A DNA stretch of 64,000 nucleotides from Phallusia mammillata (GCA_965637545.1 OZ281500.1:8804001-8868000), one strand, 5' to 3'; shown: positions 5,521 through 51,291, counted from the stretch's first letter. The notes: generated by a model from the sequence alone, not told the origin. Translations and numbers: made by a program.

Positions 5521-13686
<8,166 letters not shown>

Positions 13687-28686: not shown

Positions 28687-31600
28687 CTATTTACCGTAAT
28701 AGCAATAACCCGCATAACACCGAGTGGTGACACTTTGCTTGAAGTCGGGGCAGTGGCCAACTCCTCCTTGGTACTCGCACCTGTATGCAGTGGTCACTTG
28801 GCAGTCGGGATATTCACAAGCGGTTGTAGCCACTTTCACCGTCTTGCCGCAGAAGATCTCACAGCGCACTGTTTCCTGAAGTGGTTCAGTCACCGCATCG
28901 CAACCGTACGCACCGCCATTAGTACAGCTGCGTGTGCGAACCTTTTCACCGACTCCACAGGTGGCACTGCAACTTCCGAAAGCCGACCACTGGCTAAAGG
29001 TTGGACATTTTCCTGTTTGACAAGCTCTGGTCTCCTGACTGTCACCGAAACACTCTCCGTCGGATGGAATACAGGATCGTCCACGGATTTGACTTCCACC
29101 TCCACAGGAAGCATCGCAAGAACCCCAGGTACCCCACGGGCCGTAGTGTGGGCACTGGTTGTTGTTGCAAACCTCTACTTGGGTGTTGTCAGCATCCGAG
29201 CCACATACTTGATTCTTATACGCAACACATCGTCGCTTTCTGGTACGTCGACCTCCTCCACAAGAAACGGTACAGTCGGACCACTTTTGCCAATTGGAAA
29301 GGTAAGGAGCAACACCCGAATATTGGCGGGTAAGTTGGTTGCGGGGGATGTAACACAGAGATTGCTCGCAACAGCCCGCAAAGCTTCCCTTCAGTGGGTG
29401 AAAAGAACCGACATTGTAGTTATGATAAGGACATTGATGAGCGTGGATTGGGTTGTGGCCGGTTGGGTTTCCAAAAGAAGGATACTGGCTACCAGGAAAG
29501 TTAAATTGGAAACCAGGACCGCTGTTGTGAAAGCGACCGTTTGGATACTGTCCGGGAAGTGATGCACCTCTTGATCGATTGCGGTTTGCTTGCAGTGCCA
29601 AAGTGTAAGCCAGGATGTCCACTGAACCTTGTTTGCCAGTTTGTTTGCCAAAGGGAAACCCAGGATAATGCGGCTCAGACTGTAGTTTATTGAGGTAATA
29701 TTCCCAGTTGTCAGCGGAGATGACACCCTCCTGGATCAGGTCGTAGTATTGTTGCCTTAAGTGTTGTGGGACCAATGTGAGAGTAATGTTCAGCAGCTTG
29801 TGGAATAGAGTTTTCTGAGTAACCGACGGGTCAACGACACATCCTGATTGCAAACAGTGGTGATAACTGTCCAAGAAATCACTTGGAGACGACTCGAGAT
29901 TAAGCGGAAGGCACAGCGGTTGACCGTACATGTCTCTTGCTGTTGGTGTGGTGCTGCGGTAAGGGTCTTCACCGGATCGTACTTTCACGTGGCGCAGCTG
30001 AGCCGGATAGTAGCAGCCTAAGCCGGATTTAAAGCAACCTCCCAAAAGAGAACACTCTCTGGGATTAATACCTAAAATAGAAACAACATATGTTGTAGAC
30101 ACAGAGTAAAATGGTTTATAATAATGCGCTTTAACATGAGGAAACGAGTTAATACCTCTCCATCCAGCTCGTTTCGGTTTGATACCGATAAACTGCAAGA
30201 CGTCGATCATGTAACACCCAGCAGGTGCTTCATCGATTTCGTGCTGGTTTTGATCGAGTAAACAGTTTGTGTACAAACCACTCCATTCTTTTCCGCTCTA
30301 CAAGTAAACATTTTTATGTTAATACTTAGCAATAATCTTAAATCGCGTCCTATGTAATTCTAACATGCACAATGTGCGTAATAAAGAGTAGTTACGTAAA
30401 CACAATATTATTGAAGTTTATAAATCAAGAGATATTTCATAATCAGTGGTTTTTTGTACTGCCCCTGAACAGCTAGTTGAATTAAAAATGTATTGTAAAA
30501 ATGTAAGTAAAACCAATAACAACTTTAGTTTGTTAACTGGGGGTTTCAAGTTAAAAGTATCCAACAATGTGGAAACGTTTATCTTGCAAGATTAATGACA
30601 TTGGCCATTTAAAAATATATACAAGAACTTTTGGCTTGTCGTGCAACCCGTTGTGCCGTCCCGTTTTACTCTCAGCGCGTCTTAAAGTGCAAATTTGATC
30701 TCCATCGCCTCTTTCAATTGCGCGCTAATTTAAGCAAGGCCTTATAATTTAAAGTATTTAAAAATTAAACAAAAAAGCGTAAAATATATTTAAAAAATCT
30801 TTGAATTCAAAAAACAATGACTCTTGATATCACGTACGGTTTTGACATATTTTTGGACAAGTCGATGAAATGCCACATTGCGAATAGCAAGATGACAAGT
30901 TGGAACACCAGGAAGAACGCTGTAACCGATTGCCCGTCGAAGTGTAGCCAATTCCACGTCGAAATAACAACCAGGTTGAGAGTGGCATGCGAAGCGATCG
31001 TTTTCAAATGCTGGGTTGCTGCTGCTGCACGGTGTTCTAAAAATTAAAAAAATAGATTTGACAAAGCGGCAATAAAAATAACATGAATTAAGTGGTGACC
31101 AGCGCATATCTATCCGATTATATGTTATCTGGACTAAGCGACCTTGCAGTACCACTTTAGTCAATACTCGGAACAAATAAAAAAACGCAGTAGCTTGCAA
31201 CCATTTTTTTACAATACAACTTTCACAATTTTACGTTTTGACCAAAATAACATTTGAAGGTTATTTTCACCTTTGACAGTAAGGTACATTAACAGGGGCC
31301 TCCAGGAGTTTGTACAGATGTGGATCATGTGGATTAACGCCGCAATTGTCCGGAAACTGTTTGGGACAGAGTCGGGGAAATGGCGGAAGAACCGGTGGAA
31401 GGCCTGAAGACGAAAATGGGTAAAGTCCACCTGCGCCGATAACAAGGCCACCTGAAATGAAATATTGTGTTACTTGCTGAAATTGCAGGAAAGAAACCTT
31501 CTTCCTGATTATTTGTACCTGCATGAAAGTTCCTTCCGGATACTTCTTCGGGCTTAACGTATTTTTTCTCGAGTGTTTGTCTTGGAACTGTAACGAAGCA

Positions 31601-32391
31601 AGTTTTCGTATGTCACTATGATTTTGTTATCATGGTCCTATTTTCGGCAAACACAATTATCTTCTTTTAAAGGCAATTATATGACAAACAACAAAGTGTT
31701 TTAGTGGTTTTACAACCTTCATTTTGGTGCAGTATTTTTACCATATATATGCAGATGGACAACCGAGCCATAAATTAACACGGTTATATTAAAAACAACT
31801 TTATATGTGTGACGTTTTAAGGATTGTTTCATGAGTTTATCATTATATTTTCGTTTTCGAAAAAATCAAGCCAGTCTATTTGTTTAAATAAGTTTTTGGG
31901 GTGCATCTTGACTAGAAAACCGATAGGTTAATCGATTCCTTCTTACCATTACTTTTCTTTTCAATTTAACGTTTGCGTTCGCGGGTAAAAATAAACGATT
32001 GATTGATTGACATGGTTATTGGAGACGAAACTTACTTATTTTCGAATAGCATCCGCCTGCATACGATGCGCAGTGATCAGGACACTCGCTGTCTGGACCA
32101 GCAAGTTCAGTTGGATTTTTATTGCATTGATCAAAGTAGCAAGGGACTTTTGCAGCTGTAAAAAATAACACAGTTTGTAAATACACGGCAAACTAAAATC
32201 AATATCCACCCGACTTACTTGGAATTACTATTCCATCACTTCTCAGTTCGTCTATATTGCAGTTTTCAACTTCTGCAAAAAAACAAGTTAGATTGACGTT
32301 TTATTACGTTAAATAAGCACGTGGACATACCTGTGCCTCCGACTGCAAGCGAAAATGCGCAAAGCGCAAGAAGTGCAAAAAACTTTAACAT
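28687..32391 (-). CDS. Secreted Cys-rich protein with trefoil-like modules and 4 thrombospondin type-1 repeats (paralogue A), 718 aa
   Basis: Exons 32391-32331 (signal peptide MLKFFALLALCAFSLAVGGT), 32155-32036, 31587-31519, 31451-31271, 31036-30838, 30297-30156, 30071-28687 total 2157 nt in frame. Four WxxWxxCxxxCGxG...RxRxC TSP1 repeats. Intron positions and phases match paralogues B and C. Confidence 0.9.
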
Positions 32392-32578
32392 TGTCTCGAA
32401 GTTTCACTGTAAACAAAAACACAATCAGGTAAACGACACATGTAGCATCAAAGGCCATTATTTTACACATTGAAAGCACGACGAAACAAAACAAAAAGTC
32501 AATTATGCTTTTAAAAATCGTATACGTACCAGGCCTCGCGAGTGTTCACCTTGTTGCTGACTGGAGTGTGGCTCTCAT

Positions 32579-32614
32579 GAATGATTTTACCCCCTTCCTA
32601 CTTCCCCTTATATA
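32579..32614 (-). promoter_or_regulatory. TATA box plus initiator of paralogue A
   Basis: TATATAAG at 32614-32607 and TCATTC initiator with the A at 32582, 32 nt downstream of the TATA start. Followed by a 5'UTR exon ending at donor CTG|GTACGT (32530). Confidence 0.6.
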
Positions 32615-34177
32615 CTAGCGCCGTGGACACAAGTGACCATTATCCAGCGCGTGGATTAAGCAGCGTCCAACGAACAAATTACGGGTGTAAAGGACTCGCA
32701 GCGGAAAGATATGTTACCCCACGTACAATTACGGTTGGATGATTACAAACTTGGCTACATAGTTTTATGTCGGCAATGCCAGATTACACATATGATTGTT
32801 GCATACTCGGGCTCGTGCACGACGATCCAGAATTAGGTTACGTCAAATTGTTTGTTATGTTTGGTAATTGACGAAAAGAAGACTGCAGCTCTACAACAAA
32901 CTTATTTTTAAAAACGCATGGTCAAAAATGTAAATGCGACTTCGAATGAAAACTCTGCAACGCATGTTGTTTGTCACGAATTTTTTTGGTCATCAGTTAT
33001 TTATAACCAGCCAAGTACGTTACAACAAAGATAATGAGTTTTGCAATCAACGATTAAATTTATACCTTGCACGACAACTATCTGATATAGGTTTTAGTCG
33101 ACACACTTAGTTGTGTTAGTTTTCTGCAATCAGTAATGATTTTTTTAACTGTTCGAAGGGGGATAACTTGTACGCATTGTTTTGAGCCTGTTAATGATTG
33201 CCTAAAAGTCATCATTTTAACTGCATTTTAGCTCACTTGTTTCCAAATGTTTTCAGGGAACAATGTAATTCTCAATAAAATATTACACTCCCATTTAAAG
33301 GTTAAGGTTTCAATAAAAGTGTCCACATCTAGCATATTTGCCACTCCCTGTTCCAGGTTTGATATAAGCGTTTTTCGTGAACTTCTTCCCATTTCAAACT
33401 GAAACAGTTTGATTTTATTTTGCACAAAACCACAGCCGGTAAGGTGATAGGGAGGACAATACCTTTATAAATCAACATAAGGATAATTAAAGTTTTTTTA
33501 CATATAAATACGGCCCAAAAGAGCCAAACCAAGCTCGGACCAAATATTCAATTTGGGCTCAGTGACAGGAACTTCAATATCAAGATATCTAAAGGACTAT
33601 TCAGAGTTGAAGCCATGAGAGTTTTTGATTATATAAACACTTGGATCACATGTCAAACGCAAGCGATTTTTTGCATTAGAATTGTGCAGCCGGACCCTGG
33701 CGCCCCATTAAATGGTTGCCAAAAGCGTATTTTTTAACATTTTGTTGCGATTCGGCCAAAACCGAATGTTTACGAGGAAATTTTGATGCGTAAAACCCTT
33801 TTCTGCCAGTTAAGAACATCACTCTCTATCAAACTGCGTATTAAGTACAATCGCGCTAGAAACATCATTGTATTGCCCACTGCAGGCAACAGATTAGTAA
33901 TTTATTTACAGACTGGTAACGACGTTCGAGGCGACAATGAGACCAACAGAACGAGGATTATGATCTTTTAAAAGCAGCAGATAAACACTACTATATTACA
34001 AAAGTTACTGCGCAACACCAAATTCGGTACAAGCTAACATTAATCATCATGGTAACAATTAACTTCCCAAAGCACGTGGCTATCAAAAGGCTTGAAACAT
34101 CCCAAAAAAGCTCGCAGTCATAATAACAAGAAAATACAAGTCACGTCGTCGAAACCCACTGATCAATTACCCTAAAG

Positions 34178-34198
34178 CAGGGGGTTTCAACCTTTTTT
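34178..34198. mobile_element. Isolated hAT-like terminal repeat, partner end not found
   Basis: CAGGGGGTTTCAACCTTTTTT resembles the hAT MITE ends at 35939 and 60219 and is preceded by CCCTAAAG. I saw no matching right end or TSD. Confidence 0.35.
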
Positions 34199-34552: not shown

Positions 34553-35290
34553 TTACAGGGCGATGAAACTGGTCGCAGCGTTGATAATGGTGACCTCGAT
34601 GCTAAAGATCTCCAAGTTTATAGCTCCGTCCGGCATGATATTCTCTGTTGCGTTGTAGACCAGTACGGCGTCCAGAAACATTGGCAAGTTCGCTCGGAGT
34701 CGGGGTCGTGGGGAACCGTTATCAACAGGAATTTCTAATCCAGTAACCCAGTGTTGGTCTCCAAAGCGTGGCGAAGAAGGAACTTCTGGGATAGCAAAAT
34801 CAAATGCCAGCCAATCAAGATACTCTCTATGCACTTGTTGATAGAACCGCATCGCTTTCTTGTTGGTATACCGTCTGTCTCCGCACAACTGGGAGAAGTC
34901 CGTTCTTGTGATTTTCTTGTTGTATAGTATGGAACGAAATTGCTGGAGATACTTCAACAGGTGATAGTCAGGGCCCAAGATGGTACCGTCGTAAAATTCA
35001 ATGAACTTCGGAACATTTGTGAGCTCACACGTCTTGAGACTCCACATCCATCTTCCTGTAGGAACACACCACTCGTACATAGGAAACAAGGGTTCGCGAG
35101 CCACAGCATTGCCCAAAACAAGTTTCTCGGAGTCGTCTATTTCTTCTTGTTCGATCAAGTTGTTCTCAACAGTAGACATTTTTGCAAATTTTGCAAACAA
35201 GTTGTTCTCAACAGTCGACATTTTTTTACCTGTGCTGAATGACATTGTCCACATAATTAATCTTTCTCTTTTGTTCTTATCATACATCAA
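34553..35290 (-). CDS. Orphan intronless ORF, 245 aa, unknown function (copy 1)
   Basis: 738-nt uninterrupted ORF, visibly GC-richer than its flanks, with in-register antisense shadow ORFs (34502-34738, 34940-35242) typical of codon-structured DNA. Contains an internal 42-nt repeat (MSTVENNL twice). No motif recognised. Confidence 0.55.
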   Translation of the reverse strand: MMYDKNKRERLIMWTMSFSTGKKMSTVENNLFAKFAKMSTVENNLIEQEEIDDSEKLVLGNAVAREPLFPMYEWCVPTGRWMWSLKTCELTNVPKFIEFYDGTILGPDYHLLKYLQQFRSILYNKKITRTDFSQLCGDRRYTNKKAMRFYQQVHREYLDWLAFDFAIPEVPSSPRFGDQHWVTGLEIPVDNGSPRPRLRANLPMFLDAVLVYNATENIMPDGAINLEIFSIEVTIINAATSFIAL

Positions 35291-35938
35291 GTCTCATTAT
35301 TTTAAGAAACAAAAAAGAACGAAAAGCAATAAAACACTGTTTTTTATAATTGAGGTTTCCTTTTTACAGTACATTTTTTGCTTACATAATTATTAGTTGG
35401 TTTAAGGGAAAAGATTGCAAAATATAAAGCACCAAAATATCTGCTGCAAAGGATTGCACAACTATTTCGAAATAACCGGCTTACCGAACTGCCCAGCATA
35501 TGGTAAGGCTGTTCAAAACAACATGAAATTTGGTACACGAATTACTGTGGGAATAGCGACACTGAACATGGACTTCCATTAGTTAGTGAATCATGAGAAC
35601 ACGTAAATGACACCGCTCAATGCCATATGTCGCAAACAATCATATGGATTTTATAGGAACGATAAGTTATTTGCAAGTTCAAACTTTTTTAATTCAACTT
35701 TATTTCAGACGAACACATGACGATGGTGAAAACAAGAACATACTTGTTTGCAGCGTTTCAAAAATTTTCCTTTACTCCTTGCTTGGTTAAATCAGCATAC
35801 CAAATGACTATATGGTGTAAGACACGTCGATTACTACTTCAAGTAAAAGAACAGAGTTTATAATCTTTGATTTAATTTGGGCTTTGCCTTTATTTGTGCC
35901 TACTGTATATTTTGACCATTGCATTGTTTACCTTAAAG

Positions 35939-36294
35939 CAGTGATTCTCAAACTTATATGGATCGCGTACCACCTGACAACGTTTTCTATCGCTGCGTAC
36001 CACTAAACCTTGCATAAATAGATAGACCAAGAAATAGGCCCGTTTCCTCAACCCGGCTAGCATATTTAGCAATTTTAAAAGAATGTCCAAAACAAGAGTT
36101 TCGCCCAAACCAGGGCCGATCAGTTGGGTCAGTTGAGTTGCAATTTTTGACGGATCCTATATAGCTATAGCAGAAAACTACTCGCGTATTTTTTAAAACG
36201 GACCTAATAGCTATAGCAGAAAACTACTCGCGTACCACCTAAAAAGTTCTAGCGTACCACTAGTGGTACGCGTACCACAGTTTGAGAACCACTG
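35939..36294. mobile_element. Non-autonomous hAT (Buster/Charlie-type) MITE, unit 1 copy
   Basis: 16-bp TIR CAGTG(A/G)TTCTCAAACT; exact 8-bp TSD CCTTAAAG with central TA; CGTACCAC subterminal repeats; internal duplicated 28-bp segment. Confidence 0.9.
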
Positions 36295-36672
36295 CCTTAA
36301 AGGCATACGTGCCTATCACTCAACCGTAAATGGACTAGAAAACGTTTCATATGCACTCAAGTCTAAATTTTATAACCAAATATTTGTTTTGTCTTTTCTT
36401 CAAGATCACGATTTTTATGACGTATTGTGCGACTACCCGCAGGATTTCTATTATTCTTCTTCTCGCCCTAACCTTTTAAGTTTTCTGTATCTTGTAACTG
36501 AGTCCTAATCCTTTATGTCTAATTAGACAATATTATTGCTAAAACTCTAAAAGACACCACCAAACATTCATTTCATGCAATATATAATAATTTATTTAGA
36601 CGATACACATGGTAACGATATTCAATGGCATAAACGGTTTAATCAGCATAAATAAAAATTTTCTACATAACT

Positions 36673-39626
36673 TTATTTTCCAAGATTTTGATATTGACAC
36701 CAGCCTTCATAGCACGGTACAACTTTGGTAGCCTGGAAATCATGACAGTGACCGATTCCGCCTTGGTAACGGCACTCGTAGGTCTTGTTAACTTTGCAAA
36801 CTGGGTAGTGGCAAGCGGTTGTCTGAGTTTCCACAGGTTTGCCGCAATAGATTTGGCATTTGACGACGTCGAAGAGAGATTCGGTCAAGGTATGGCATCC
36901 GTAGTCGCCGCCATCAGTGCAGTGGCGTGTGCGGGTCTTTTCACCAACGCCACAGTGGATGCTGCAGTTACTGAAAGTCGACCATTCGCTCAGCCTCGGG
37001 CATCGTCCCTCCCGACAAGGTCTGGACTCTTGGGCCGCCCCACCACAAGTTGCTCCGCTTGGAATGCATTGGCGATGTCTGACCTGGGTTCCGCCGCCAC
37101 ACGATGCGGTGCAAGATCCAAAGTCTGACCATTGACCATAGACAGGACATTGCATCTCGTTGCATACCGCCGTTTCTTCGTCCACACCGTCGCACTGCTC
37201 TTTCTTGTAGGCGACGCAACGACGTTTCCTAGTTCGGTGACCGCCGCCGCATGTTTTAGAGCAAGCTCCCCATGTTTCCCAATCTGCGTAGTAAGAAGCA
37301 ACTCCGGAATACTGCGTAACGATGTCGTGTCTTGGAATATAGCACATGTGCCTCTCACAGCATCCGGCAAAGCTTCCCTTCAGAGCAAATTGGGCTCCGA
37401 GTCGGTAATTTTGGTATGGACAGGAAGGCTGTTGTGGGTAGAATGGAGGGTAAACTGGTGGCTGAGGGTAGGGGTTGTATCCTGGGTAAGGGTTCGGCTG
37501 AGGGTAAGGGTTCGGCTGGGGGTAAGGGTTCGGCTGGGGGTAAGGGTTTGGTTGAGGGTAGCTTGGACCACTTGGATAAGGGTTTGGGTAATATGGACCG
37601 TTGTTGGGTAGGTTTGTGGGATTAACTCCTCCGTATGAACGTCCGCCAGTGAGATTAAGACTGTAAGCCAGTATTGGGTCAATGGAATTGCCGTAGCCTG
37701 GGAAATGACTTCCGTATGTGTTTGGAACGTACTCGGACTTAAGCTTCTGCAAGTAGTATTGCCAGTTGTCAGGTGCGATCACTCCATCAAGGACTAATTT
37801 GTAGAAAGATTGCTTCAGATGATCGGGAACGTGGCTGACAGTGATGTTAAAGAGCTGGTATTGGATAGCTTGATGGGTAATAGACGGATCAACCACACAT
37901 CCTGATTGACGACAGTAGTGGTAGCTGCTGAGATAGTCGGATGGAGACGAATGCTGGTTGAAGGGAAGACACATTGGTTGGCCGTACATGTCTCTACCAG
38001 ATGGAGTGGAGCTGCGGTAGGGATCTTTTCCCGAGCGAACCTTTACATTATGTAGTTGCGCAGCAAAGAAGCAGCCAATTCCGGCCTTGGAGCAGCCTCC
38101 GATCAATGCACATTGCTGAGGCGCAATTCCTAAAAATCAAAAGCACAATTATACAAAGTCCAACCAATTTATAGTGATACCAAAAAATGTTTAACAATTT
38201 TTAAGCGTACCTAGCCATCCTGCTCTCTTGGGCTTAATTCCAATGTAAAGAAGAACATCAACCATGTAACATCCAGCGGGCTGTCTGTGGACCAACTCAA
38301 GGTTTTGCTGAATAAGGCACTTGGTGTAAAGACCGTTCCACGGCTTTCCGCTCTAGAATTTATACGAAAGTTTGCTTAACCATTTGGATCTGTTTGTGTT
38401 TAGGATTATTGTTTGTTTTAATCTTACCTTGACTGTGTATTTTTTGACCAGACGGTGAAACTCTTTATTACGAATAGCAAGCTGGCACACTGGTACACCA
38501 GGAAGAACGCTGTGACCGAGAGCACGACGAACAGTAGCCAATTGAGTATCGAAGTAGCATCCCGGTTTTGCGTGACAGGCCAAGGGGTTGGTTTCCAAAG
38601 ATGGATCGCTTGCGCTGCATGGGATTCTGTCAAAAGGACATAAAAGATGCTTTTAGAAAAAAAGTATATTTTGTGTTAGAATAACATATTTTAGATAAAG
38701 TGTAAATATAAAATAGAAACTTTTTTAATAAAATTGTGATATAATACTTTCAGGAGTTTGTGGTTGAAGTTATTTATATTATAATATAAGATAATTACTG
38801 ATAATTATCAGTTGTTCTTTCGTACCTTTGGCAATATGGGACATCTACTGGAGGCTCAAAGAGCTTGTAAAGATTTGGGTCATGTTCATGAATTCCACAG
38901 TTGTCAGGAAACACTGGTGGGCACTGGTTAATTGGTGGGAAAAACGGAGGGATGTGCACAGGAGGGTAATTGTACAGAGATGGTGGCCCGCCTTTAAAAA
39001 CAGAAAAATATTAACAAATAAGATAAATGACAAGATGTACTCAAATTTTTTAATCTAGTTTTTGCTTACCTGGTGGGTAGTAGCTACCAGATCGACCAAG
39101 TAAGTCTCCCTCTCCATAAAGTTCCTCAAGTTTAGCAAATGGTACTGCAAAAATAATGCCAAATATAATCATACAATTCATGAAATATTACACAGGTTAA
39201 TTTTAATTAATAAGTGGTATTCTTTTTTTCTTGATTTTCAAAAGACCGCCCTACATTTTTTAATATCTATTTTTGCCATAAATATAAGTATTGATTTGTA
39301 GTGGCGGCAATTCTGTAAACCGTACTTATTTTCGAGAAACATCCTCCGCTGTAAACAGAGCAGTGAGATGGACATGCAGATTGATCAGTGATGGTTGTGC
39401 TGTTTGCGTCACAAGGATCTTCAACACAGGGAACGGCGGAATCTGTTTTTAAAACAAAGATTAATTAAGTATTGTTTGGTCTAAGATGCTCACAGTCAAT
39501 TAGAACGTATTTACCTTGAACTATTTCTCCGTATTTCACCAAATCATTCAGTGTAGTGCAATTACTTTGCTGTCCTCTGGCCAAGGCAGCCAACGAGGCA
39601 ACAAAAACAAGAAGTATCGAATGCAT
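36673..39626 (-). CDS. Secreted trefoil-like/TSP1 protein, paralogue B, 755 aa
   Basis: Exons 39626-39515 (signal peptide MHSILLVFVASLAALARG), 39442-39326, 39144-39070, 38991-38826, 38626-38428, 38352-38211, 38129-36673 total 2268 nt in frame. The 199-nt and 142-nt exons are the same size as in paralogue A. Four TSP1 repeats and a (YPQPNP)n linker. Confidence 0.92.
37484..37555. repeat. Coding 18-bp minisatellite x4 encoding PQPNPY (paralogue B)
   Basis: GGGTAAGGGTTCGGCTG(A/G) x3 plus one variant GGGTAAGGGTTTGGTTGA, with degenerate flanking units. Confidence 0.95.
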
Positions 39627-39858
39627 ATCTGTGGAAAACCAAGGTTTAGTATTAGAAGTAAATGTTAATTTAGCGTACGCTAATAGTTTTTACCAGTCAA
39701 TATTACAACATTTCAAAATGGTTTCAAAAGCGGAATGTACATCACGTATTCGTAAAACGTGCTCCATTTACCTTGTTTCTTTTCGAGGTACCCAACTTGT
39801 CTTCAACTCTTGAGTGTCAATTTGAATTGTAACGGTGAACCAGTTATCAATTCGATTT

Positions 39859-39947
39859 GAATGATTTCTTAGCCTTAGCGCGTTGCTTATATACGCTACA
39901 ACAGCTTGCGCCACCAACCACCGCGCCCTGAGGGGAATGTGACGTCA
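39859..39947 (-). promoter_or_regulatory. Core promoter of paralogue B: initiator, TATA box and CRE palindrome
   Basis: TATATAAG at 39893-39886; TCATTC initiator with the A at 39862 (31 nt spacing); perfect TGACGTCA at 39940-39947; 5'UTR exon ends at donor AAG|GTAAAT (39772). Confidence 0.6.
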
Positions 39948-41417
39948 AAATGTGTCACTAGATTTTGCCTAAAGGCGGGAAAATTGAGGCGTATAATGGT
40001 AATGGATTCCCTGAAGCAAACTTTGCCATAAAAATAAAAACAACTTGAAACGATAATATTCCGTCGAGACAAAAATAAAACGTTTTTTAATTAACGACAG
40101 GATTTCTGATTGGATTCGCTGTTTACGGTGGTCAGATATGAATCACTCGGTGGATTAAATCGCACTTAATTTGCGGTTTTATGGAAAACTGTTGCACTCG
40201 GTCGGCGCAAGGCGCTTGACGTATTTTGACGTATTTGACCTACGGGACAAGCGCAAACATCAATCTTCAGGAAGTTGATATCAAGAGTGGCAAATAAAAA
40301 ACGGCATTGAATTAACTATTACACTAATAGCAATAACTCCTTTGTTCCTGACTATGAAAGCATAACTTCAGATAACGCACCTTTAAAAAAAATCGCCACA
40401 TACCCTGTATATTATTCAAAACATTCTATGAAGTAATTATAGTTAATTATATTTAGTAAAAAGTAAGTCAACAAGCTGTGCAATATTGCGTTGATGTGTC
40501 ATGGTATTTTTCGCTGTATTGCTGCAAAATTAATGCCGTTCTTGAAGTTTTCCCTGTAGCTATTTTTCGCCAAAAGAATGTCAAGTTCCGCGAACGTCAT
40601 AAAGCTTTGACGTGTCATTTGACTTTTTCGACAAATCCCGCGAAATGTGATTCACGCCTACTTATAGTTTGGCTTGGCGCCTATAGGCGTCAACATTCGT
40701 GTACGAATGTTGGAATTGCCCGGAACATTATTGCGGCATTTTGCTTATAACTTGAAGTTTTAATCGTTTTGTTTTGCATTAGTATGACGAAGGCAGTCAC
40801 CTGGCACTTCTTCTTGGTGGGCAAATTTGTTGACCGTACTTTTTTGAACAATTTTGAAATTTGCATAATGGGTACTATATTTAGTAATTTTGAATTGCAT
40901 CGGCCAACGCCCATGACAGTTATGAAAAGCAACTGCACTTTTTGCAACCTCTAATCAATAGAAAATGTTGATTATGGTCAACGCTGAAGCATTCACTTAT
41001 GTTTGCGGTCGTGCTTTTGGTTTCAATTTTTACATTACGTTTTAGTCCAGCAAATTAATTTTCCAGGTGTGGCACCCAGTTCCATTTCAGGATACCTACA
41101 CTTACATCAATACCCTATTGAAGGCGTTGCCTACAAAGCTACCAACAACAATAAAATGATTAGCCTATTTGATATCATCAGAGCGCGACAAATCAAGTGA
41201 AACAAAAGGCTTGCGACTTAACAAGTCACGCGAATAGCATCGGAAACAGCTTTCTACTCTGAACCAACATCACACAAGGTGCCACATTGCGTTTGAGTAA
41301 ACAATTAACCAGTTACAGCCTATTTACTATGTTGCTTCAGCAGTGAGCGTTTTTGCTTGCCTGAGAGTAGTCACGTCCACAACTCAGGCCAACAACAAAG
41401 CAAAGAAGAATAGAAAA

Positions 41418-42592
41418 ATGGCAACCGACGTTCGGATATGGTTCCCTGTGTCAGTCACTGTTGTAGCTTACCTAGTTTTTTTCGCCTACGAAATTTCAAG
41501 ACGGTAAGTTTACGTGTGTATAACCAATATAACGTGTAGTTATGAAGTGTGTGGGAGCCTTGGTTTTCCGGTATGCAACAAGGAGGCTGTTTTATTGTAA
41601 CATAAATACCCAAATTTCAGTATTTGTCGTACCTGAACATTGCTACAGCCGTACTATGATAAAATATACTCACAGTCTTTCTTGTTTGCTGTGTGTATGT
41701 ATAGCATCAAATGTTTGAATAAGTTGGTGGTTGGTGTTACGACCGTTTCGCGTTTACATCGACGGAAAGCCGCGCCTTATGCACGCTGATATCATCAAAA
41801 ACAAATACGTTGATTGTTTTTACGATGTAACAAAGCAGTTTCATTATTGTCTTCCTAAATTTAGTGTGGTAAACTGTTTTGGGTTGAATCTTTTTCAGTC
41901 TTGCCCACACTAGTGGGGCATTGGAATCTCAAAGATGCATTGTTAGACTTAAATCACTAATTCGATACGAGCCTCACTTAAGTCGCTTTTCTAAATCCTT
42001 GACTTGACTTAAGTCACAGGTTGGAAAGTCTACACTCGACTCAAACTTGCTGCAGATTGACTTGATTTAAACACTAGCGTAAACCGTGTTTTGTATTCAA
42101 AACCGATAGATATTTTGCATTATTTTTTTTGGGGGGGGGGTCTTCAACCTCATTAAGCAATAATTTGACATACATTTTACTAGGCGGCTTTGTTTGATTG
42201 CTGTGTTATTGCCAAATGTTTTTTTTATATTTGCAACCTGCATTGAAAATTCCGAAATGCCAAAGCGCTCACGTGGCTATAACTTGTAGCTAAACCAAAT
42301 GAAAGAACCTTGGCTGATTTTGAGACAAAATTAATTCAACTTGGATTCGACTGAAACCCATTTCCCCATACTGCTTAGATGCAATGTTATTAAGACATGA
42401 TTTTTGTGCAATTCAAATCTTTTTGACTATTACCTTTTTTGCAGATGTACAAAAGTTTCAGATGTTGGTAGTGATTTGAATGGAAGCTATGCAGCTTTGC
42501 CAACACAGGATGCTGGATCCCCAACTCCCTTTCATGGTAACGATATGGCAGTGTATAAGTCGTTGCAGAGTATCGCTTCCACGTCCGTTTAA
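41418..42592 (+). CDS. Candidate small single-pass membrane protein (unit 1 copy, 77 aa if two exons)
   Basis: Exon 41418-41503 (MATDVRIWFPVSVTVVAYLVFFAYEISR, donor CG|GTAAG) joins in phase to exon 42445-42592 (acceptor TTTTTTGCAG|A). An internal donor ATG|GTAACG suggests further exons are possible. Confidence 0.45.
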
Positions 42593-45500
42593 AGCACTTT
42601 TTACCGTTGCACTTGTTTCTTTGTTGTTGTTGTTTGCAGTAAAAATTCGTTGTTTCCCTTTTAGTATATTACTGAACGTTTCTGTGCAAATTATTTTTTA
42701 TTTTCTAGCTAACGCCAAAAGTACGTAAAAACACCAAAAATGAAATGAAGTTGTTTGAATGCACAATACGAAAATAATAGAGTGCCAACTACATCACTAA
42801 ACAGAAAAACAAATTGTTTTTTTCTAAAAATAATTGAAAAAAGACGCTCTAAAGATTTTGCGTAACAACTGTTTGTTGCCGTGCTAACAAAAAAAAACGG
42901 CGATAAAATGCGTTGGATTATTTATATGCAATAAAAAGGGACAAATCACGATTACACAAAAATGTAAGCTTTAGGCTACAAAAGGTGGTGTTTGCATTGT
43001 TCCAGGTTTGCAAAATTTGACAAAATATGAAAAACACTGCCACAATTATTTTTATGTCCGAATTTGGTAAACCAGTTGTAGCCCGCAACAGGTTAGTGAC
43101 GTGAGACGCTCGCATTTCACCTTTCATTGCCACAGTTGCCTAAAAATGGTCAAATTGGGGATCAGTACAGTTTTACATAGTATCGTATTTAGTTACACGC
43201 TGTGACCACTGCGTTCTCAGGTTTATATAAATTCTTGTGTGCCACACCAAACAAGGTTTTGCTTTTAGTTTTTAAACTATCGAATTCCTGATCAACGCTG
43301 ACTAGTATGCATTCTGAAGAATGTTGCATTCTGCTGGGTTTTCTTAATGAATTTTTATCTTTATAAAATTATACCGTGGCCTATATTATGTTACGCTTTA
43401 TGTTAAGCTTTGTTGTGGATTCCCTGTAAGTTCACTACTAAAATAGTGAAACAACAACTAAAGATCAAAGGTTCAGGCTTCTGCTGTAAATCACTGCAAA
43501 CATAGAATTGAGATAATAAAGTCATGCAATGGTACCAAAGTGAAAGGCAAATATACGCAATTACCACATATCCGTTGTATTTGAAAAAAGCAATAACGAA
43601 GTCGTATGGTATGCACAGTGGCAATATAGAGTTTAAGCCATTCTTTCTACTTAGAAATAATTTCTCCACTATGTTTAAAAATAACTTTTATGCAAGCGGT
43701 TTATAAACTTTTGCCTCATTAAGTTATCACATTGCGCTCAGTTTGTGCTACGTCTTAGATAGTTCATAGAAATCGTTCCAAGAATTACAAACATACACTA
43801 TTATGGGAGGAAAGTTAAAGACTGGTAGTATTTGGCCATGAAGCAGTTGTTGAAATGATATAAACGACTTAGCAAATTAGGTACACAAAAATGTATTGTT
43901 TTTATTTATTGAAAAACGCCAAAGGATATTAAATTTTAACAGCACCAAAAATCGCTATAAAGCTCAACGATGAATGGTTATAGCTGTGTACGGCGACGAA
44001 GACAAAAACGTGCTTATGGCTTAAATTTGTGACAAAAAAGTGACAAAAATACCCAAGTTATGTTGTGTTGTAGCGGTTCGTGTGTAATTTAAGGATTTTG
44101 CTTGTTGACTGGTATTGCACTTTTCAGGACATATAATAAATCATCCAATATATTTTTTTGGATGAAAGCAAATCTACCTTGCATGCACAAATTGAGTGTG
44201 CTGAAATTGTCAGCTATATGTCAATATATGTGACTGAAATCTGTTAAGCATCCGTGGATCAGGACGATTTCTGTATTAGTACATCTTTAATTTAAAAGTA
44301 AAAAAAATAAAAAAGGGACTAAAAAATATAAGAGTTGACTGGAGTTGGATTGGACAAATTTGTTAATAAGCTTCGTTCGTTATCTTACACTGCCTAACGT
44401 TGCTATGGAAAGCTGAATTTTTTTCAAGGGGAGTATTAAAACTACTTATATCGTTTGTCATAAATGTAATAAAGTTACATATATGCAAACAGTCCTTGGC
44501 AGCTCCGTGGTTTTGTCAGCACATGATTCTGAATCACAAACTCTTTTTACAGTAACGATGTTGCCTTGTTTTTACGAAATAAAGCTTCCACTTCCCTTTA
44601 CTGGACTTTTTTATCGTATCACCTGCGTTTGCCTTGTTGATTCCTTAGTGGTTTATTCATTTTTTTTATGTTGGTGATACATCATCTTCTGGTAATCTTT
44701 TATTATTTGCTAATAAACGCTAAAATGGCGTAAAAATATAAATAGAGAGTTGTGTCATTGTGCAAAACAGAAGACCAAAAATTACATGTGCAAAATGCAA
44801 AAAACGGGAAAAAACGCAAAAAATATGATTTTACACAATAAATAAAATCGAAACTAAAAGTCTTGATTTATTGGTTTCCTTAGCGTCCATCTTGAAATTC
44901 GTCAATTAGTTATGACAAAACTTCTGCAGAACCCCGTACACCGCCTTGTAAAGAGAACAGGGACCCGACCAATCTCGTTTAGCCTGTGAAAAACAAACAA
45001 TTGTAAATCAAATACGGGTTACACTAAATCTTTTACAATTGAAAGCTTTTAGGGTGTTCCTCTATCGACTTTGTTAATGAGTGGTTTAAGTTTAACAACT
45101 TTAGCGGTATCTCCCAGTATTGTGCTCATAAGATATGCTATAGGCGTTTAGGAAAAAAAATCGGCGGTTCGTACTTTACATAAATTAAATACTGCGTCAG
45201 AGTTTTGTGGGCAAAACGTCTCTTTTAAAAATAACATTAAATTAAAAAAAATTGTGTTATGGTCTCCAATGTAAACAAATCCACAAATTTACGGTTGAAT
45301 TTTGACTACCATGCCCTAAAATTTTAATGACCCTTTTCACATTTTATCCCGGTTACAGCCATCGACAATCGAAGGTATAATGTCGAGGCACAAATTGCTG
45401 GCTACTTCCTTCTCTAAACGCTGGTGAAAACGTTAGTTTAGCATAATGTTAATGTTTTCGCTAAAGATTAGGTTTAGAATGCTTAAAAACAGGTTATGAC

Positions 45501-46027
45501 AAACGACTGTCCTATTCAGGGTGACTTGATAACCCTGCAACGATTGCAGTTTCAGTATTTCCTTAAGGGAATTTATTAGGTAAAGGATTAGTTGGGTAAT
45601 TTTTTTGGCAGTGCGCTTAACATTAAACTTAGGCAACAATTTGGAGATCAAAGAGCACAATATGAAGTTGAAAACAAATTTTCGTTCACTTGGAATTCTT
45701 ACGTAACATTTGGTATACAGTCCAAGATGCTTAACTTTGGCTTGGTAAGTCACCATTATATTCATTTTGGCTATATCGTAAATTGTTGGGCTAATTTTGG
45801 CAAAAGCAATACTGCCTGTAAATGCCTTTTAAACTAAGTAGAAATTACTTTTTTTAAGCTTTTTCTTTACCTTGATATGTTTTGCGTTGAAATCACTACC
45901 GTAGAGACTAGATAAAAAATAAAAAGTTTTTCTTTGCAACCATAATGCCTGACAGCAATCGTCAACGTGGTGGCGTTCAAACGTGTTTGTGCTAATGCAG
46001 TGTGTAGTGTCTTGGCAGGTATCCACT

Positions 46028-46771
46028 TTATTGTAAAAAAAAATTGAAACTGGTCGCAGCGTTGATAATGGTGACCTCGATGCTAAAGATCTCCAAGTTT
46101 ATAGCTCCGTCCGGCATGATATTCTCTGTTGCGTTGTAGACCAGTACGGCGTCCAGAAACATTGGCAAGTTCGCTCGGAGTCGGGGTCGTGGGGAACCGT
46201 TATCAACAGGAATTTCTAATCCAGTAACCCAGTGTTGGTCTCCAAAGCGTGGCGAAGAAGGAACTTCTGGGATAGCAAAATCAAATGCCAGCCAATCAAG
46301 ATACTCTCTATGCACTTGTTGATAGAACCGCATCGCTTTCTTGTTGGTATACCGTCTGTCTCCGCACAACTGGGAGAAGTCCGTTCTTGTGATTTTCTTG
46401 TTGTATAGTATGGAACGAAATTGCTGGAGATACTTCAACAGGTGATAGTCAGGGCCCAAGATGGTACCGTCGTAAAATTCAATGAACTTCGGAACATTTG
46501 TGAGCTCACACGTCTTGAGACTCCACATCCATCTTCCTGTAGGAACACACCACTCGTACATAGGAAACAAGGGTTCGCGAGCCACAGCATTGCCCAAAAC
46601 AAGTTTCTCGGAGTCGTCTATTTCTTCTTGTTCGATCAAGTTGTTCTCAACAGTAGACATTTTTGCAAATTTTGCAAACAAGTTGTTCTCAACAGTCGAC
46701 ATTTTTTTACCTGTGCTGAATGACATTGTCCACATAATTAATCTTTCTCTTTTGTTCTTATCATACATCAA
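46028..46771 (-). CDS. Orphan ORF copy 2 (247 aa) with its C-terminus rewritten by the duplication junction
   Basis: Identical translation to 34553-35290 up to AATSF, then reads NFFLQ* through the A9T filler instead of IAL*. Confidence 0.5.
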   Translation of the reverse strand: MMYDKNKRERLIMWTMSFSTGKKMSTVENNLFAKFAKMSTVENNLIEQEEIDDSEKLVLGNAVAREPLFPMYEWCVPTGRWMWSLKTCELTNVPKFIEFYDGTILGPDYHLLKYLQQFRSILYNKKITRTDFSQLCGDRRYTNKKAMRFYQQVHREYLDWLAFDFAIPEVPSSPRFGDQHWVTGLEIPVDNGSPRPRLRANLPMFLDAVLVYNATENIMPDGAINLEIFSIEVTIINAATSFNFFLQ

Positions 46772-47419
46772 GTCTCATTATTTTAAGAAACAAAAAAGAA
46801 CGAAAAGCAATAAAACACTGTTTTTTATAATTGAGGTTTCCTTTTTACAGTACATTTTTTGCTTACATAATTATTAGTTGGTTTAAGGGAAAAGATTGCA
46901 AAATATAAAGCACCAAAATATCTGCTGCAAAGGATTGCACAACTATTTCGAAATAACCGGCTTACCGAACTGCCCAGCATATGGTAAGGCTGTTCAAAAC
47001 AACATGAAATTTGGTACACGAATTACTGTGGGAATAGCGACACTGAACATGGACTTCCATTAGTTAGTGAATCATGAGAACACGTAAATGACACCGCTCA
47101 ATGCCATATGTCGCAAACAACCATATGGACTTTATAGGAACGATAAGTTATTTGCAAGTTCAAACTTTTTTAATTCAACTTTATTTCAGACGAACACATG
47201 ACGATGGTGAAAACAAGAACATACTTGTTTGCAGCGTTTCCAAAATTTTCCTTTACTCCTTGCTTGGTTAAATCAGCATACCAAATGACTATATGGTGTA
47301 AGACACGTCGATTACTACTTCAAGTAAAAGAACAGAGTTTATAATCTTTGATTTAATTTGGGCTTTGCCTTTATTTGTGCCTACTGTATATTTTGACCAT
47401 TGCATTGTTTACCTTAAAG

Positions 47420-47728
47420 CAGTGATTCTCAAACTTATATGGATCGCGTACCACCTGACAACGTTTTCTATCGCTGCGAACCACTAAACCTTGCTTGAAT
47501 AGATAGACCAAGAAATAGGCCCGTTTCCTCAACCCGGCTAGCATATTTAGCAATTTTAAAAGAATGTCCAAAACAAGAGTTTCGCCCAAACCAGGGCCGA
47601 TCAGTTGGGTCAGTTGAGTTGCAATTTTAAAACGGACCTAATAGCTATAGCAGAAAACTACTCGCGTACCACCTAAAAAGTTCTAGCGTACCACTAGTGG
47701 TACGCGTACCACAGTTTGAGAACCACTG
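47420..47728. mobile_element. hAT MITE, unit 2 copy (47 bp shorter)
   Basis: Same TIRs and CCTTAAAG TSD as 35939-36294, but lacks the internal duplication. Confidence 0.9.
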
Positions 47729-48106
47729 CCTTAAAGGCATACGTGCCTATCACTCAACCGTAAATGGACTAGAAAACGTTTCATATGCACTCAAGTCTAA
47801 ATTTTATAACCAAATATTTGTTTTGTCTTTTCTTCAAGATCACGATTTTTATGACGTATTGTGCGACTACCCGCAGGATTTCTATTATTCTTCTTCTCGC
47901 CCTAACCTTTTAAGTTTTCTGTATCTTGTAACTGAGTCCTAATCCTTTATGTCTAATTAGACAATATTATTGCTAAAACTCTAAAAGACACCACCAAACA
48001 TTCATTTCATGCAATATATAATAATTTATTTAGACGATACACATGGTAACGGTATTCAATGGCATAAACGGTTTAATCAGCATAAATAAAAATTTTCTAC
48101 ATAACT

Positions 48107-51059
48107 TTATTTTCCAAGATTTTGATATTGACACCAGCCTTCATAGCACGGTACAACTTTGGTAGCCTGGAAATCATGACAGTGACCGATTCCGCCTTGG
48201 TAACGGCACTCGTAGGTCTTGTTAACTTTGCAAACTGGGTAGTGGCAAGCGGTTGTCTGAGTTTCCACAGGTTTGCCGCAATAGATTTGGCATTCGACGA
48301 CGTCGAAGAGAGATTCGGTCAAGGTATGGCATCCGTAGTCGCCGCCATCAGTGCAGTGGCGTGTGCGGGTCTTTTCACCAACGCCACAGTGGATGCTGCA
48401 CTTACTGAAAGTCGACCATTCGCTCAGCCTCGGGCATCGTCCCTCCCGACAAGGTCTGGACTCTTGGGCCGCTCCACCACAAGTTGCTCCGCTTGGAATG
48501 CATTGGCGATGTCTGACCTGGGTTCCGCCGCCACACGATGCGGTGCAAGATCCAAAGTCTGACCATTGACCATAGACAGGACATTGCATCTCGTTGCATA
48601 CCGCCGTTTCTTCGTCCACACCGTCGCACTGCTCTTTCTTGTAGGCGACGCAACGACGTTTCCTAGTTCGGTGACCGCCGCCGCATGTTTTAGAGCAAGC
48701 TCCCCATGTTTCCCAATCTGCGTAGTAAGAAGCAACTCCGGAATACTGCGTAACGATGTCGTGTCTTGGAATATAGCACATGTGCCTCTCACAGCATCCG
48801 GCAAAGCTTCCCTTCAGAGCAAATTGGGCTCCGAGTCGGTAATTTTGGTATGGACAGGAAGGCTGTTGTGGGTAGAATGGAGGGTAAACTGGTGGCTGAG
48901 GGTAGGGGTTGTATCCTGGGTAAGGGTTCGGCTGAGGGTAAGGGTTCGGCTGGGGGTAAGGGTTCGGCTGGGGGTAAGGGTTTGGTTGAGGGTAGCTTGG
49001 ACCACTTGGATAAGGGTTTGGGTAATATGGACCGTTGTTGGGTAGGTTTGTGGGATTAACTCCTCCGTATGAACGTCCGCCAGTGAGATTAAGACTGTAA
49101 GCCAGTATTGGGTCAATGGAATTGCCGTAGCCTGGGAAATGACTTCCGTATGTGTTTGGAACGTACTCGGACTTAAGCTTCTGCAAGTAGTATTGCCAGT
49201 TGTCAGGTGCGATCACTCCATCAAGGACTAATTTGTAGAAAGATTGCTTCAGATGATCGGGAACGTGGCTGACAGTGATGTTAAAGAGCTGGTATTGGAT
49301 AGCTTGATGGGTAATAGACGGATCAACCACACATCCTGATTGACGACAGTAGTGGTAGCTGCTGAGATAGTCGGATGGAGACGAATGCTGGTTGAAGGGA
49401 AGACACATTGGTTGGCCGTACATGTCTCTACCAGATGGAGTGGAGCTGCGGTAGGGATCTTTTCCCGAGCGAACCTTTACATTATGTAGTTGCGCAGCAA
49501 AGAAGCAGCCAATTCCGGCCTTGGAGCAGCCTCCGATCAATGCACATTGCTGAGGCGCAATTCCTAAAAATCAAAAGCACAATTATACAAAGTCCAACCA
49601 ATTTATAGTGATACCAAAAAATGTTTAACAATTTTTAAGCGTACCTAGCCATCCTGCTCTCTTGGGCTTAATTCCAATGTAAAGAAGAACATCAACCATG
49701 TAACATCCAGCGGGCTGTCTGTGGACCAACTCAAGGTTTTGCTGAATAAGGCACTTGGTGTAAAGACCGTTCCACGGCTTTCCGCTCTAGAATTTATACG
49801 AAAGTTTGCTTAACCATTTGGATCTGTTTGTGTTTAGGATTATTGTTTGTTTTAATCTTACCTTGACTGTGTATTTTTTGACCAGACGGTGAAACTCTTT
49901 ATTACGAATAGCAAGCTGGCACACTGGTACACCAGGAAGAACGCTGTGACCGAGAGCACGACGAACAGTAGCCAATTGAGTATCGAAGTAGCATCCCGGT
50001 TTTGCGTGACAGGCCAAGGGGTTGGTTTCCAAAGATGGATCGCTTGCGCTGCATGGGATTCTGTCAAAAGGACATAAAAGATGTTTTTAGAAAAAAATAT
50101 ATTTTGTGTTAGAATAACATATTTTAGATAAAGTGTAAATATAAAATAGAAACTTTTTTAATAAAATTGTGATATAATACTTTCCGGAGTTTGTGGTTGA
50201 AGTTACTTATATTATAATATAAGATAATTACTGATAATTATCAGTTGTTCTTTCGTACCTTTGGCAATATGGGACATCCACTGGAGGCTCAAAGAGCTTG
50301 TAAAGATTTGGGTCATGTTCATGAATTCCACAGTTGTCAGGAAACACTGGTGGGCACTGGTTAATTGGTGGGAAAAACGGAGGGATGTGCACAGGAGGGT
50401 AATTGTACAGAGATGGTGGCCCGCCTTTAAAAACAGAAAAATATTAACAAATAAGATAAATGACAAGATGTACTCAAATTTTTTAATCTAGTTTTTGCTT
50501 ACCTGGTGGGTAGTAGCTACCAGATCGACCAAGTAAGTCTCCCTCTCCATAAAGTTCCTCAAGTTTAGCAAATGGTACTGCAAAAATAATGCCAAATATA
50601 ATCATACAATTCATGAAATATTACACAGGTTAATTTTAATTAATAAGTGGTATTCTTTTTTTCTTGATTTTCAAAAGACCGCCCTACATTTTTTAATATC
50701 TATTTTTGCCATAAATATAAGTATTGATTTGTAGTGGCTGCAATTCTGTAAACCGTACTTATTTTCGAGAAACATCCTCCGCTGTAAACAGAGCAGTGAG
50801 GTGGACATGCAGATTGATCAGTGATGGTTGTGCTGTTTGCGTCACAAGGATCTTCAACACAGGGAACGGCGGAATCTGTTTTTAAAACAAAGATTAATTA
50901 AGTATTGTTTGGTCTAAGATGCTCACAGTCAATTAGAACGTATTTACCTTGAACTATTTCTCCGTATTTCACCAAATCATTCAGTGTAGTGCAATTACTT
51001 TGCTGTCCTCTGGCCAAGGCAGCCAACGAGGCAACAAAAACAATAAGTATCGAATGCAT
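48107..51059 (-). CDS. Secreted trefoil-like/TSP1 protein, paralogue C (near-identical to B), 755 aa
   Basis: Exons 51059-50948, 50875-50759, 50577-50503, 50424-50259, 50060-49862, 49786-49645, 49563-48107. Frame and splice sites intact; at least 4 amino-acid differences from B. Confidence 0.92.
48918..48989. repeat. Coding 18-bp minisatellite x4 (paralogue C)
   Basis: Identical to 37484-37555. Confidence 0.95.
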
Positions 51060-51291
51060 ATCTGTGGAAAACCAAGGTTTAGTATTAGAAGTAGATGTTA
51101 ATTTAGCGTACGCTAATAGTTTTTACCAGTCGATATTACAACATTTCAAAATGGTTTCAAAAGCGGAATGTACATCACGTATTCGTAAAACGTGCTCCAT
51201 TTACCTTGTCTCTTTTCGAGGTACCCAACTTGTCTTCAACTCTTGAGTGTCAATTTGAATTGTAACGGTGAACCAGTTATCAATTCGATTT

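Follow-up and report, generated by a model that had tools for sequence, protein, structure and literature searches.

Three paralogous genes in tandem

We have analysed a 64,000-nucleotide stretch of the Phallusia mammillata genome (GCA_965637545.1 OZ281500.1:8804001-8868000, referred to here as the window), which contains 0 runs of N. The window carries three genes, A, B and C, encoding predicted secreted, disulfide-rich proteins in which thrombospondin type 1 (TSP1) repeats are combined with modules that we assign, with differing confidence, to the trefoil (P-type) family. All three genes lie on the minus strand at the positions proposed in an earlier interpretation of this DNA (the sequence-only reading), with the following structures.

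28687-32391, minus strand: gene A, modelled from three-frame translation, GT/AG sites and exon-wise tblastn to gene B
Modelled exons of gene A, minus strand: 32391-32331, 32272-32219, 32155-32036, 31587-31519, 31451-31271, 31036-30838, 30297-30156, 30071-28687 (including the stop codon)
36673-39626, minus strand: gene B, from three-frame translation and GT/AG sites, with a structure equal to that of the RNA-verified gene C
Exons of gene B, minus strand (phases 1,1,1,2,0,1): 39626-39515, 39442-39326, 39144-39070, 38991-38826, 38626-38428, 38352-38211, 38129-36673
48107-51059, minus strand: gene C, from RNA contigs of sequencing runs X7 and X9
Exons of gene C, minus strand: 51059-50948, 50875-50759, 50577-50503, 50424-50259, 50060-49862, 49786-49645, 49563-48107

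Gene C is gene B repeated ~11.43 kb further along. Genes B and C each have seven exons with intron phases 1,1,1,2,0,1, an organisation that had been put forward for all three genes and that RNA data now verify for C. Gene A fits it only in part. Its last seven exons match the gene B layout, but the first coding exon runs into a stop unless a phase-1 intron (32330-32273) is spliced out, and gene A is therefore modelled with eight exons. For the searches described below, exons were submitted singly, by reference, and the spliced products were represented by contiguous database proteins (P0034, P0005 and others).

Transcription and splicing of gene C

Public contigs were compared with positions 45500-51100 of the window (5601 letters). 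Spliced RNA contigs of two studies (X7 and X9) agree exactly with the model of gene C at all six introns: they skip 49563-49643, 49787-49861, 50061-50258, 50424-50501, 50578-50758 and 50876-50947. The introns have GT..AG ends on the minus strand, and none of the splice joints occurs in the two DNA runs. An X9 contig of 2293 nucleotides spans 48066-51043 with 0 mismatches to gene C and has the C-type letter at all five of the exonic B/C-discriminating sites that fall within it. The transcripts therefore derive from gene C or from an allele of identical sequence, and their splicing agrees with the model. Around 0.4 of the sampled sequence words, equal to the exon fraction, are found in five RNA-type runs (X7, X8, X9, X12 and X14) and next to none in six other runs from the same species (X19-X24), so that expression of the gene is condition-specific.

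Two limits apply to these data. The RNA contigs seen carry C-type letters and thus support C, not A or B, although contigs drop minor variants and B-type transcripts are not separable in them. Further, the run metadata are coded, and stage and tissue cannot be read from them.

Organization of the encoded proteins

The features of the gene B product, from the N-terminus to the C-terminus, are as follows.

39573-39626, minus strand: signal peptide (18 residues, ending ...ALARG), by direct reading, no predictor
39326-39442, minus strand: M1, small 5-Cys module of exon 2 (plus one Cys from exon 1), by direct reading
38428-38923, minus strand: M2, 3' part of exon 4 (38923-38826) and exon 5 (38626-38428), from AlphaFold2 (AF2), PDB comparison, hhalign and relatives
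38056-38352, minus strand: M3, exon 6 (38352-38211) and the first 24 codons of exon 7 (38129-38056), from hhalign and relatives
37885-37983, minus strand: M4 ('GQP.C ... YH.C...GC.VDP'), partial hhalign match
37484-37560 (in gene C, 48918-48994), minus strand: 18-nucleotide tandem repeat, 4.3 copies, encoding a Pro/Tyr-rich hexapeptide linker
37330-37422, minus strand: M5 ('CPY ... GCCE..CYIPR'), conserved family motif preceding the TSP1 repeats
36835-37290, minus strand: three TSP1 repeats (~37290-37141, 37140-36994 and 36993-36835), Pfam PF00090, E 1e-20 to 1e-24
36673-36834, minus strand: Cys-rich C-terminal tail and stop codon, no Pfam match

The proteins are predicted to be ~735-755 residues long. 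A signal peptide would be followed by a small 6-Cys module, a disordered Gly/Pro/Tyr linker and then a compact head of ~270 residues, in which two degenerate trefoil modules appear to pack with several helices. Beyond the head would come a second, Pro/Tyr-rich linker, a 'CPY...GCC...CY.PR' motif, three TSP1 repeats and the Cys-rich tail. By direct reading the signal peptide, the 5-Cys exon-2 module, the Cys motifs listed in the sequence-only reading and the Cys-rich tail are indeed present in each of A, B and C, and the Tyr/Pro-rich linker described there, with its 18-nucleotide repeat, is found in B and C. The number of TSP1 repeats required correction. The last exon of A, B and C contains three repeats that match PF00090 at the E-values given above for B, every homologue likewise has three, and the supposed fourth repeat is the Cys-rich tail. 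In B a WxxW motif is present in TSP1 repeat 1 and CxxS/TCG motifs in repeats 1 and 2; such sites are glycosylated in TSP1 domains in general, and here it is the motifs that are observed. Searches of every exon piece of B and of full-length homologues against Pfam (E up to 10) returned nothing but TSP1, and an NCBIfam search gave no match.

An exon-by-exon sum gives 49 Cys, an odd number, in each of the mature A and B proteins. Given the signal peptide, the 49 Cys and the TSP1 repeats, the proteins are predicted to be secreted.

Two probable degenerate trefoil modules in the head

Canonical trefoils contain six Cys with the spacing C-x9-10-C-x9-C-x4-CC-x10-C, which form disulfides 1-5, 2-4 and 3-6, and occur in mucus peptides of vertebrates, in GH31 glucosidases, in ZP proteins and in frog mucins. 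M2 and M3 resemble members of this family (PF00088; TFF1-3, the GH31 N-terminal P-domain of GAA, MGAM and SI, and the frog integumentary mucins) in the core helix and beta-hairpin and in the 'C...GC[C]FD...C' register, and M3 additionally shares 'GW.GIT..C'. They differ from it in being embedded in a larger helical domain and in being joined to TSP1 repeats. The six-Cys spacing is kept in neither M2 nor M3 of B. M2 has Tyr in place of the trefoil C5 and a loop 3 that an inserted helix makes ~11 residues longer. In M3 the C2 position is Ala and the C4 position Gly, and loop 3 has ~5 residues instead of 10. The two Cys lost from M3 thus align with exactly the two partners of one trefoil disulfide.

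Module alignments were compared by hhalign with 28 canonical Phallusia trefoils, both with and without the rows that keep the double Cys. M3 scored 96% (P 1e-9) with all rows and 86-92% without the double-Cys rows, over trefoil columns 5-42, and M2 scored 66-73% with all rows. The corresponding values for M4 were 24% (a partial match) and 9%, so that this 'C...GC.VDP' module, read earlier as a trefoil, gives a weak, partial signal and may be the remnant of a third one. The same claim for the exon-2 module and the 'GCC...CYIP' module was not sustained. M1 scored 5% with all rows and 0.3% without the double-Cys rows and M5 4-6% and 0.05% (5 rows left), and we reject a trefoil origin for both on these hhalign values. 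The M1-homologous part of the P0034 model described below is predicted with a per-residue confidence (pLDDT) of 87-94.

Relatives in which the trefoil pattern is better preserved link M2 and M3 to canonical domains. A chromosome-8 exon of the same genome, matched by window exon 5 at E 6.7e-7, belongs to a gene with a window-like module order and five TSP1 repeats. The exon-5-like module of that gene contains CCFD and matches Pfam Trefoil over positions 9-43 (E 0.014), and the modules equivalent to the exon 6/7 junction score 22.8 bits there and 22.1 bits in a second chromosome-8 gene, above the Pfam gathering score of 21 bits. Canonical or near-canonical trefoils stand at the M2 and M3 positions of these chromosome-8 relatives and of the more distant database matches P0088, P0095, P0109 and P0120, with 22-23 bits for the M3 equivalent (above the cut-off in P0088, P0095 and P0109) and 13-16 bits for the M2 equivalent; one of these distant-match clusters is named 'P-type domain-containing protein' in UniProt. 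Within the core family, M3 of Clavelina P0046 retains CGW...GCC and all Cys, and M2 of P0044 and P0087 retains GCC[FY]D and the full Cys set.

These better-preserved relatives form a group of ascidian proteins with trefoils and 5-7 TSP1 repeats: Ciona LOC100178821 (UniProt F6PX32, 'P-type domain-containing protein'), Clavelina LOC143468761 and the two Phallusia chromosome-8 genes. They share with the window family the order N-terminal Cys module, M2-like exon, M3-like exon, 'CPY...GCC...CY' and TSP1 repeats, and are linked to it by phmmer and six-frame matches. They differ from it in having canonical or near-canonical trefoil Cys, in reaching the Pfam cut-off and in having 5-7 TSP1 repeats. 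In the two Phallusia loci (L027, G000:C8:17393001-17403000, and L028, G000:C8:13727001-13737000, both minus strand), whose Ciona counterpart is LOC100178821, a canonical trefoil at the N-terminus is followed by near-canonical M2- and M3-like exons, 'CPY...CC...CY' and at least five TSP1 repeats.

Structure prediction points in the same direction. We modelled P0034, a TSP1-free Ciona savignyi fragment, with AlphaFold from a 104-row alignment. The resulting 515-residue model has pLDDT >90 at residues 170-343 and 370-440 and shows that M2 and M3 each contain a helix-plus-hairpin unit, with several further helices surrounding these units. Folding of window exon 5 by itself gave a pLDDT of 92.5. 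When this exon-5 model was compared by VIA with 48,161 PDB representative chains, just 5 reached Z >=2, and ranks 1-3 were trefoil P-domains, namely those of human GAA (8cb6, 90-134), human NtMGAM (3l4t, 13-50) and porcine MGAM (9kz7, 66-104), at a root-mean-square deviation of 2.0-2.1 Å over 37-38 residues with 22-26% identity. As judged from the model, the occupation of the first three ranks by P-domains is not chance. The AF2 model and the VIA comparison thereby give M2 the three-loop trefoil fold, with a short helix carrying C3 and a two-stranded hairpin carrying C4/C5 and C6. In a language-model search with residues 165-345 of P0034 (M2-M3), the top 3 named clusters all carried PF00088 (score 0.78), which we treat as a lead only.

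Several observations tell against the assignment of M2 and M3 to the trefoil family, and several of them make up the case for a different view, in which the Cys modules are not trefoil-derived and the likeness reflects convergence of small disulfide-rich domains. The Pfam check proposed with the sequence-only reading came back negative: PF00088 had 0 matches, at the gathering score or even at E up to 10, on the exons of B and six full-length homologues, and a six-frame scan of the genome found ~60 canonical trefoils elsewhere and none in the two gene clusters of the family. Nor did HMMER with an M2 profile against PDB sequences retrieve a trefoil or anything else relevant. The proposed AlphaFold and Foldseek check was divided, yielding confident AF2 models while Foldseek against the PDB retrieved no trefoil, and nothing below E 1, with either the 515-residue or the exon-5 model; VIA-align with the whole P0034 model returned generic three-helix-bundle matches alone, at 390-448. 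The six-Cys pattern is broken in both modules, and the loop-3 'PW' and Trp of canonical trefoils are not kept, so that a TFF-like lectin activity cannot be assumed. Removal of the double-Cys rows lowers the M2 hhalign score to 22%. The helix and hairpin of M3 (316-332 of the P0034 model) are seen within the whole model, not in a module folded singly. The VIA Z-scores for exon 5 are low (2.5-2.9, thus below 3), as expected from the tiny size of a trefoil domain, and a language-model score of 0.78 lies in a range often reached by shuffled proteins. Against convergence, four methods converge on the trefoil family: the hhalign score of M3 holds over the trefoil columns, the homologous modules of relatives exceed the Pfam cut-off, the best structural matches are all P-domains, and the Cys missing from M3 are the two halves of a single trefoil disulfide. 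On balance we consider convergence very improbable.

We therefore regard the identification of M3 as a degenerate trefoil as well supported by the sequence comparisons, and that of M2 as a trefoil that has lost C5 and gained a helix in loop 3 as supported. In the models the head forms a single compact domain, rich in helices and centred on these two degenerate trefoils, and not a string of independent trefoils. The multi-trefoil architecture envisaged in the sequence-only reading thus survives for the exon 4/5 module and for the exon 6/7 junction, but not for the front half of the protein as a run of such domains.

An ascidian gene family

Six-frame searches of the same genome (240 Mb) identified at least 13 paralogues that share the layout of exons 4-7 and are arranged in two tandem clusters. 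Six genes lie on the chromosome of the window, namely A, B, C and three more (D, E and F) at 8-24 kb past the window, and six or seven further genes are on chromosome 5, in addition to the two distant relatives on chromosome 8. The A-B-C array is thus part of a larger, still expanding family. The exon translations of a chromosome-5 paralogue (L015/L008) are identical to Phallusia mammillata UniProt entries. The first chromosome-5 gene (L015, G000:C5:7044001-7054000, corresponding to P0036 / P0122) carries a CysD/WxxW domain (PF13330) ahead of the usual modules. Two other loci of the chromosome-5 array depart from the layout: L018 (G000:C5:7074001-7084000) has an in-frame TGA in its last exon (~8043-9569), and in L016 the exon 4-5 pair was found and exon 6-7 was not. 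These are possible pseudogenes or fragments in a young array.

Protein databases were examined by word search and by an exhaustive HMMER search with P0034 as the query; a word search with ten full-length members was swamped by low-complexity sequence (8000 scored, 4 matches). The exhaustive search gave 90 matches, and every named one is ascidian, from Ciona intestinalis (six loci), C. savignyi, Clavelina lepadiformis (five), Styela clava (five) and Phallusia. Their names are 'uncharacterized', apart from one 'SCO-spondin-like' and one 'coadhesin-like'. The family therefore appears, so far, to be restricted to ascidians, and the lineage specificity anticipated for it applies at this level and not at that of the species. 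Several members of the P0043 / P0049 clusters come from intron-less marine metatranscriptome contigs of 2-3 kb, including a Tara-type MERC record, and the family may also occur in pelagic tunicates.

A maximum-likelihood tree (quick method, with support from the SH-aLRT branch test only) places B and C as sisters at zero distance, and the (B,C) pair as sister to (F,(A,P0001)). As A pairs with P0001 in this tree, P0001, from another species, is its orthologue. On chromosome 5 the genes make up a separate young clade, and the outgroup consists of the ascidian proteins with trefoils and 5-7 TSP1 repeats.

Known systems offer partial likenesses. SCO-spondin, from which Ciona XP_018667725 takes its automatic 'SCO-spondin-like' name, is likewise secreted and contains TSP1 repeats, but the window family has no Pfam matches to vWD, LDLa, EMI, TIL or CTCK and just three TSP1 repeats; the TSP1 match accounts for this name, which is an artefact of annotation. 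Gel-forming mucins are equally distinct, the window genes having no vWD assemblies, CysD, Pro/Thr/Ser (PTS) repeats or CTCK, and CysD/WxxW is limited in the family to the first gene of the chromosome-5 cluster.

The closest candidate for an already named member is Ci-META2, a secreted Ciona protein upregulated in metamorphosis (at settlement) and expressed in the adhesive papillae, neck and dorsal trunk. If the window genes belonged to a META2 family, a role in settlement and metamorphosis would be likely. Descriptions of META2 (UniProt F6V1M6, KH.C6.197) give it a secretion signal and three TSP1 repeats, its mass of 85.5 kDa compares with 83-87 kDa for members of the window family, and ~600 of its residues are unannotated, as in that family. 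However, none of the ~20 named homologues bears the META2 name, its mass of 85.494 kDa matches none of the Ciona proteins compared, and the likeness is one of description and mass. We consider the identity possible, at somewhat less than even odds. Literature searches with six Ciona LOC identifiers, with KH.C6.197 and with trefoil, TSP1 and Ciona in combination found nothing on this family.

The B/C duplication

Genes B and C lie in two head-to-tail units of 11.47 kb.

34564-46034, no strand: duplication unit 1, with gene B (self-BLAST 99.3-99.4%)
46035-46044, no strand: junction filler A9T between the two units
46045-57451, no strand: duplication unit 2, with gene C (self-BLAST 99.3-99.4%)

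Global alignment of the units shows 43 substitutions (0.37%) and 70 indel columns. Six of the substitutions between B and C are exonic, and four of these change an amino acid. A and B, by comparison, share ~50% amino-acid identity in the last exon. The growth of the family by tandem duplication, with an old split between A and B and a very recent one between B and C, is thus as the sequence-only reading had it. By its sequence divergence, the B/C duplication appears younger than typical allelic divergence.

At the junction the two units are separated by the ten non-templated letters A9T, without microhomology, which suggests end joining rather than unequal recombination. Non-allelic homologous recombination between flanking repeats was rejected, because the boundary sequence lacks a third copy. 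A Helitron-type origin was rejected as well, the unit ends being TG...TTGT (on the other strand AC...TTCA) and unlike TC...CTRR.

The small divergence of the units raises the question of whether B and C are one gene and the repeat an assembly artefact in which two haplotypes have been placed head to tail. In this reading the 0.37% would be allelic, and it does lie below the usual heterozygosity of ascidians. Short-read contigs of the DNA runs X1 and X4 cross the gene singly, with a mixture of B-type and C-type letters, and contig depth gives neither copy number nor zygosity of the duplication. Against this, a 70-nucleotide unitig made up only of junction-specific words (46005-46074), and so including A9T, is present with 0 mismatches in both X1 (2020) and X4 (2018), which come from different studies, and the flanking contigs of these runs end precisely at 46034 and 46045, as contigs should at the edge of a repeat. 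Tandem units of ~9 kb are also found at other loci that bear the same family of open reading frames (ORFs) as these units. As two further DNA data sets contain the junction, the duplication is probably real, and an artefact seems to us a slim prospect.

The ORF in question, of 245 codons on the minus strand (34553-35290 and 46028-46771), starts each unit, has no Pfam or NCBIfam match and contains the left breakpoint of the B/C duplication. Its family has at least 71 six-frame matches in the genome, dispersed over all large chromosomes, and elsewhere it occurs in tandem units of 9.0-9.4 kb with 98-99.98% identity. RNA contigs cover it weakly (46094-46271 and 46529-46710). It may be a mobile or array-forming element. 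Between this ORF and gene C lies a short high-copy repeat (47430-47730; in unit 1, ~35996-36300), where the summed contig depth in DNA runs is 3,000-15,000 as against ~50 alongside and where many contigs end; it is likely to be a small transposable element.

Neighbouring genes

The remainder of the window contains the following coding features.

400-4000, plus strand: WD40 and Utp12 gene (PWP2-like)
21200-23600, plus strand: cytochrome P450
61400-62400, plus strand: another WD40 gene
62846-63982, minus strand: 378-codon ORF at the window end, no Pfam match

Possible function of the proteins

Taking the locus as a whole, the explanation that we favour, with a probability of about 0.7, is that A, B and C belong, as three transcribable paralogues, to a family of secreted, disulfide-rich proteins restricted to ascidians, in which A and B separated long ago and B and C arose by the 11.47 kb duplication.

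What such proteins do can be approached by analogy. Tentatively, and with a likelihood that we put at even or a little below, they may serve in an extracellular matrix, tunic, mucus or adhesive secretion, to which they would contribute binding modules and covalent links. Binding to glycans or matrix partners would fall to the TSP1 repeats and the trefoil-derived head, the Pro/Tyr-rich segments would be spacers that are flexible or open to cross-linking, and covalent pairing could occur through an unpaired 49th Cys. Many genes for secretion products expand in tandem, as this array is still doing, and by the same analogy the Pro/Tyr-rich repeat linkers and the mucin-type CysD/WxxW domain in one paralogue fit a structural or secreted product. 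TSP1 proteins recur in marine adhesives, for example the sea-anemone TSRL with three TSP1 repeats and proteins of the Ciona stolon and the Pinctada byssus, which resemble the window family in being small, secreted and equipped with few TSP1 repeats (PMC12817120). Unlike the window family, these adhesive proteins have no trefoil-derived head, and an adhesive role here would rest on the analogy.

The same proteins could instead be matricellular or signalling regulators in the manner of thrombospondins, CCN proteins and R-spondins. TSP1 repeats are common among signalling modulators, the proteins are of moderate size with a single folded head, and expression is run-specific. The analogies just given, from continuing tandem expansion and repeat linkers to CysD/WxxW and the marine adhesives, fit a structural or secretion product better, and we think a regulatory role unlikely.

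A more far-reaching proposal combines these elements. The ~270-residue head would be a new composite extracellular domain, in which two trefoils, each lacking a different disulfide, are fused with helices into a rigid unit. It would be an ascidian invention, perhaps including META2, that serves larval or juvenile attachment or tunic assembly and whose dosage evolves through copy-number variants such as B/C. In this full form we regard the proposal as speculative and rather improbable.

Implications

The family is a new combination of domains from known parts. To our knowledge, no family uniting worn-down trefoils with TSP1 repeats has been described before, and such modules, set in a larger helical domain and joined to TSP1 repeats, are not known from vertebrates. 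It illustrates how a tiny disulfide-stabilized fold can lose different pairs of Cys, to the point of falling below the reach of family models, whilst its core is retained. For some 20 annotated ascidian genes it also provides a structural reading of ~500 'uncharacterized' residues. With its non-homologous A9T junction, the B/C pair offers a clean and dated case of a tandem duplication that carries a gene, and is useful for the study of array growth. If the family includes META2, it would offer a molecular handle on ascidian settlement and metamorphosis.

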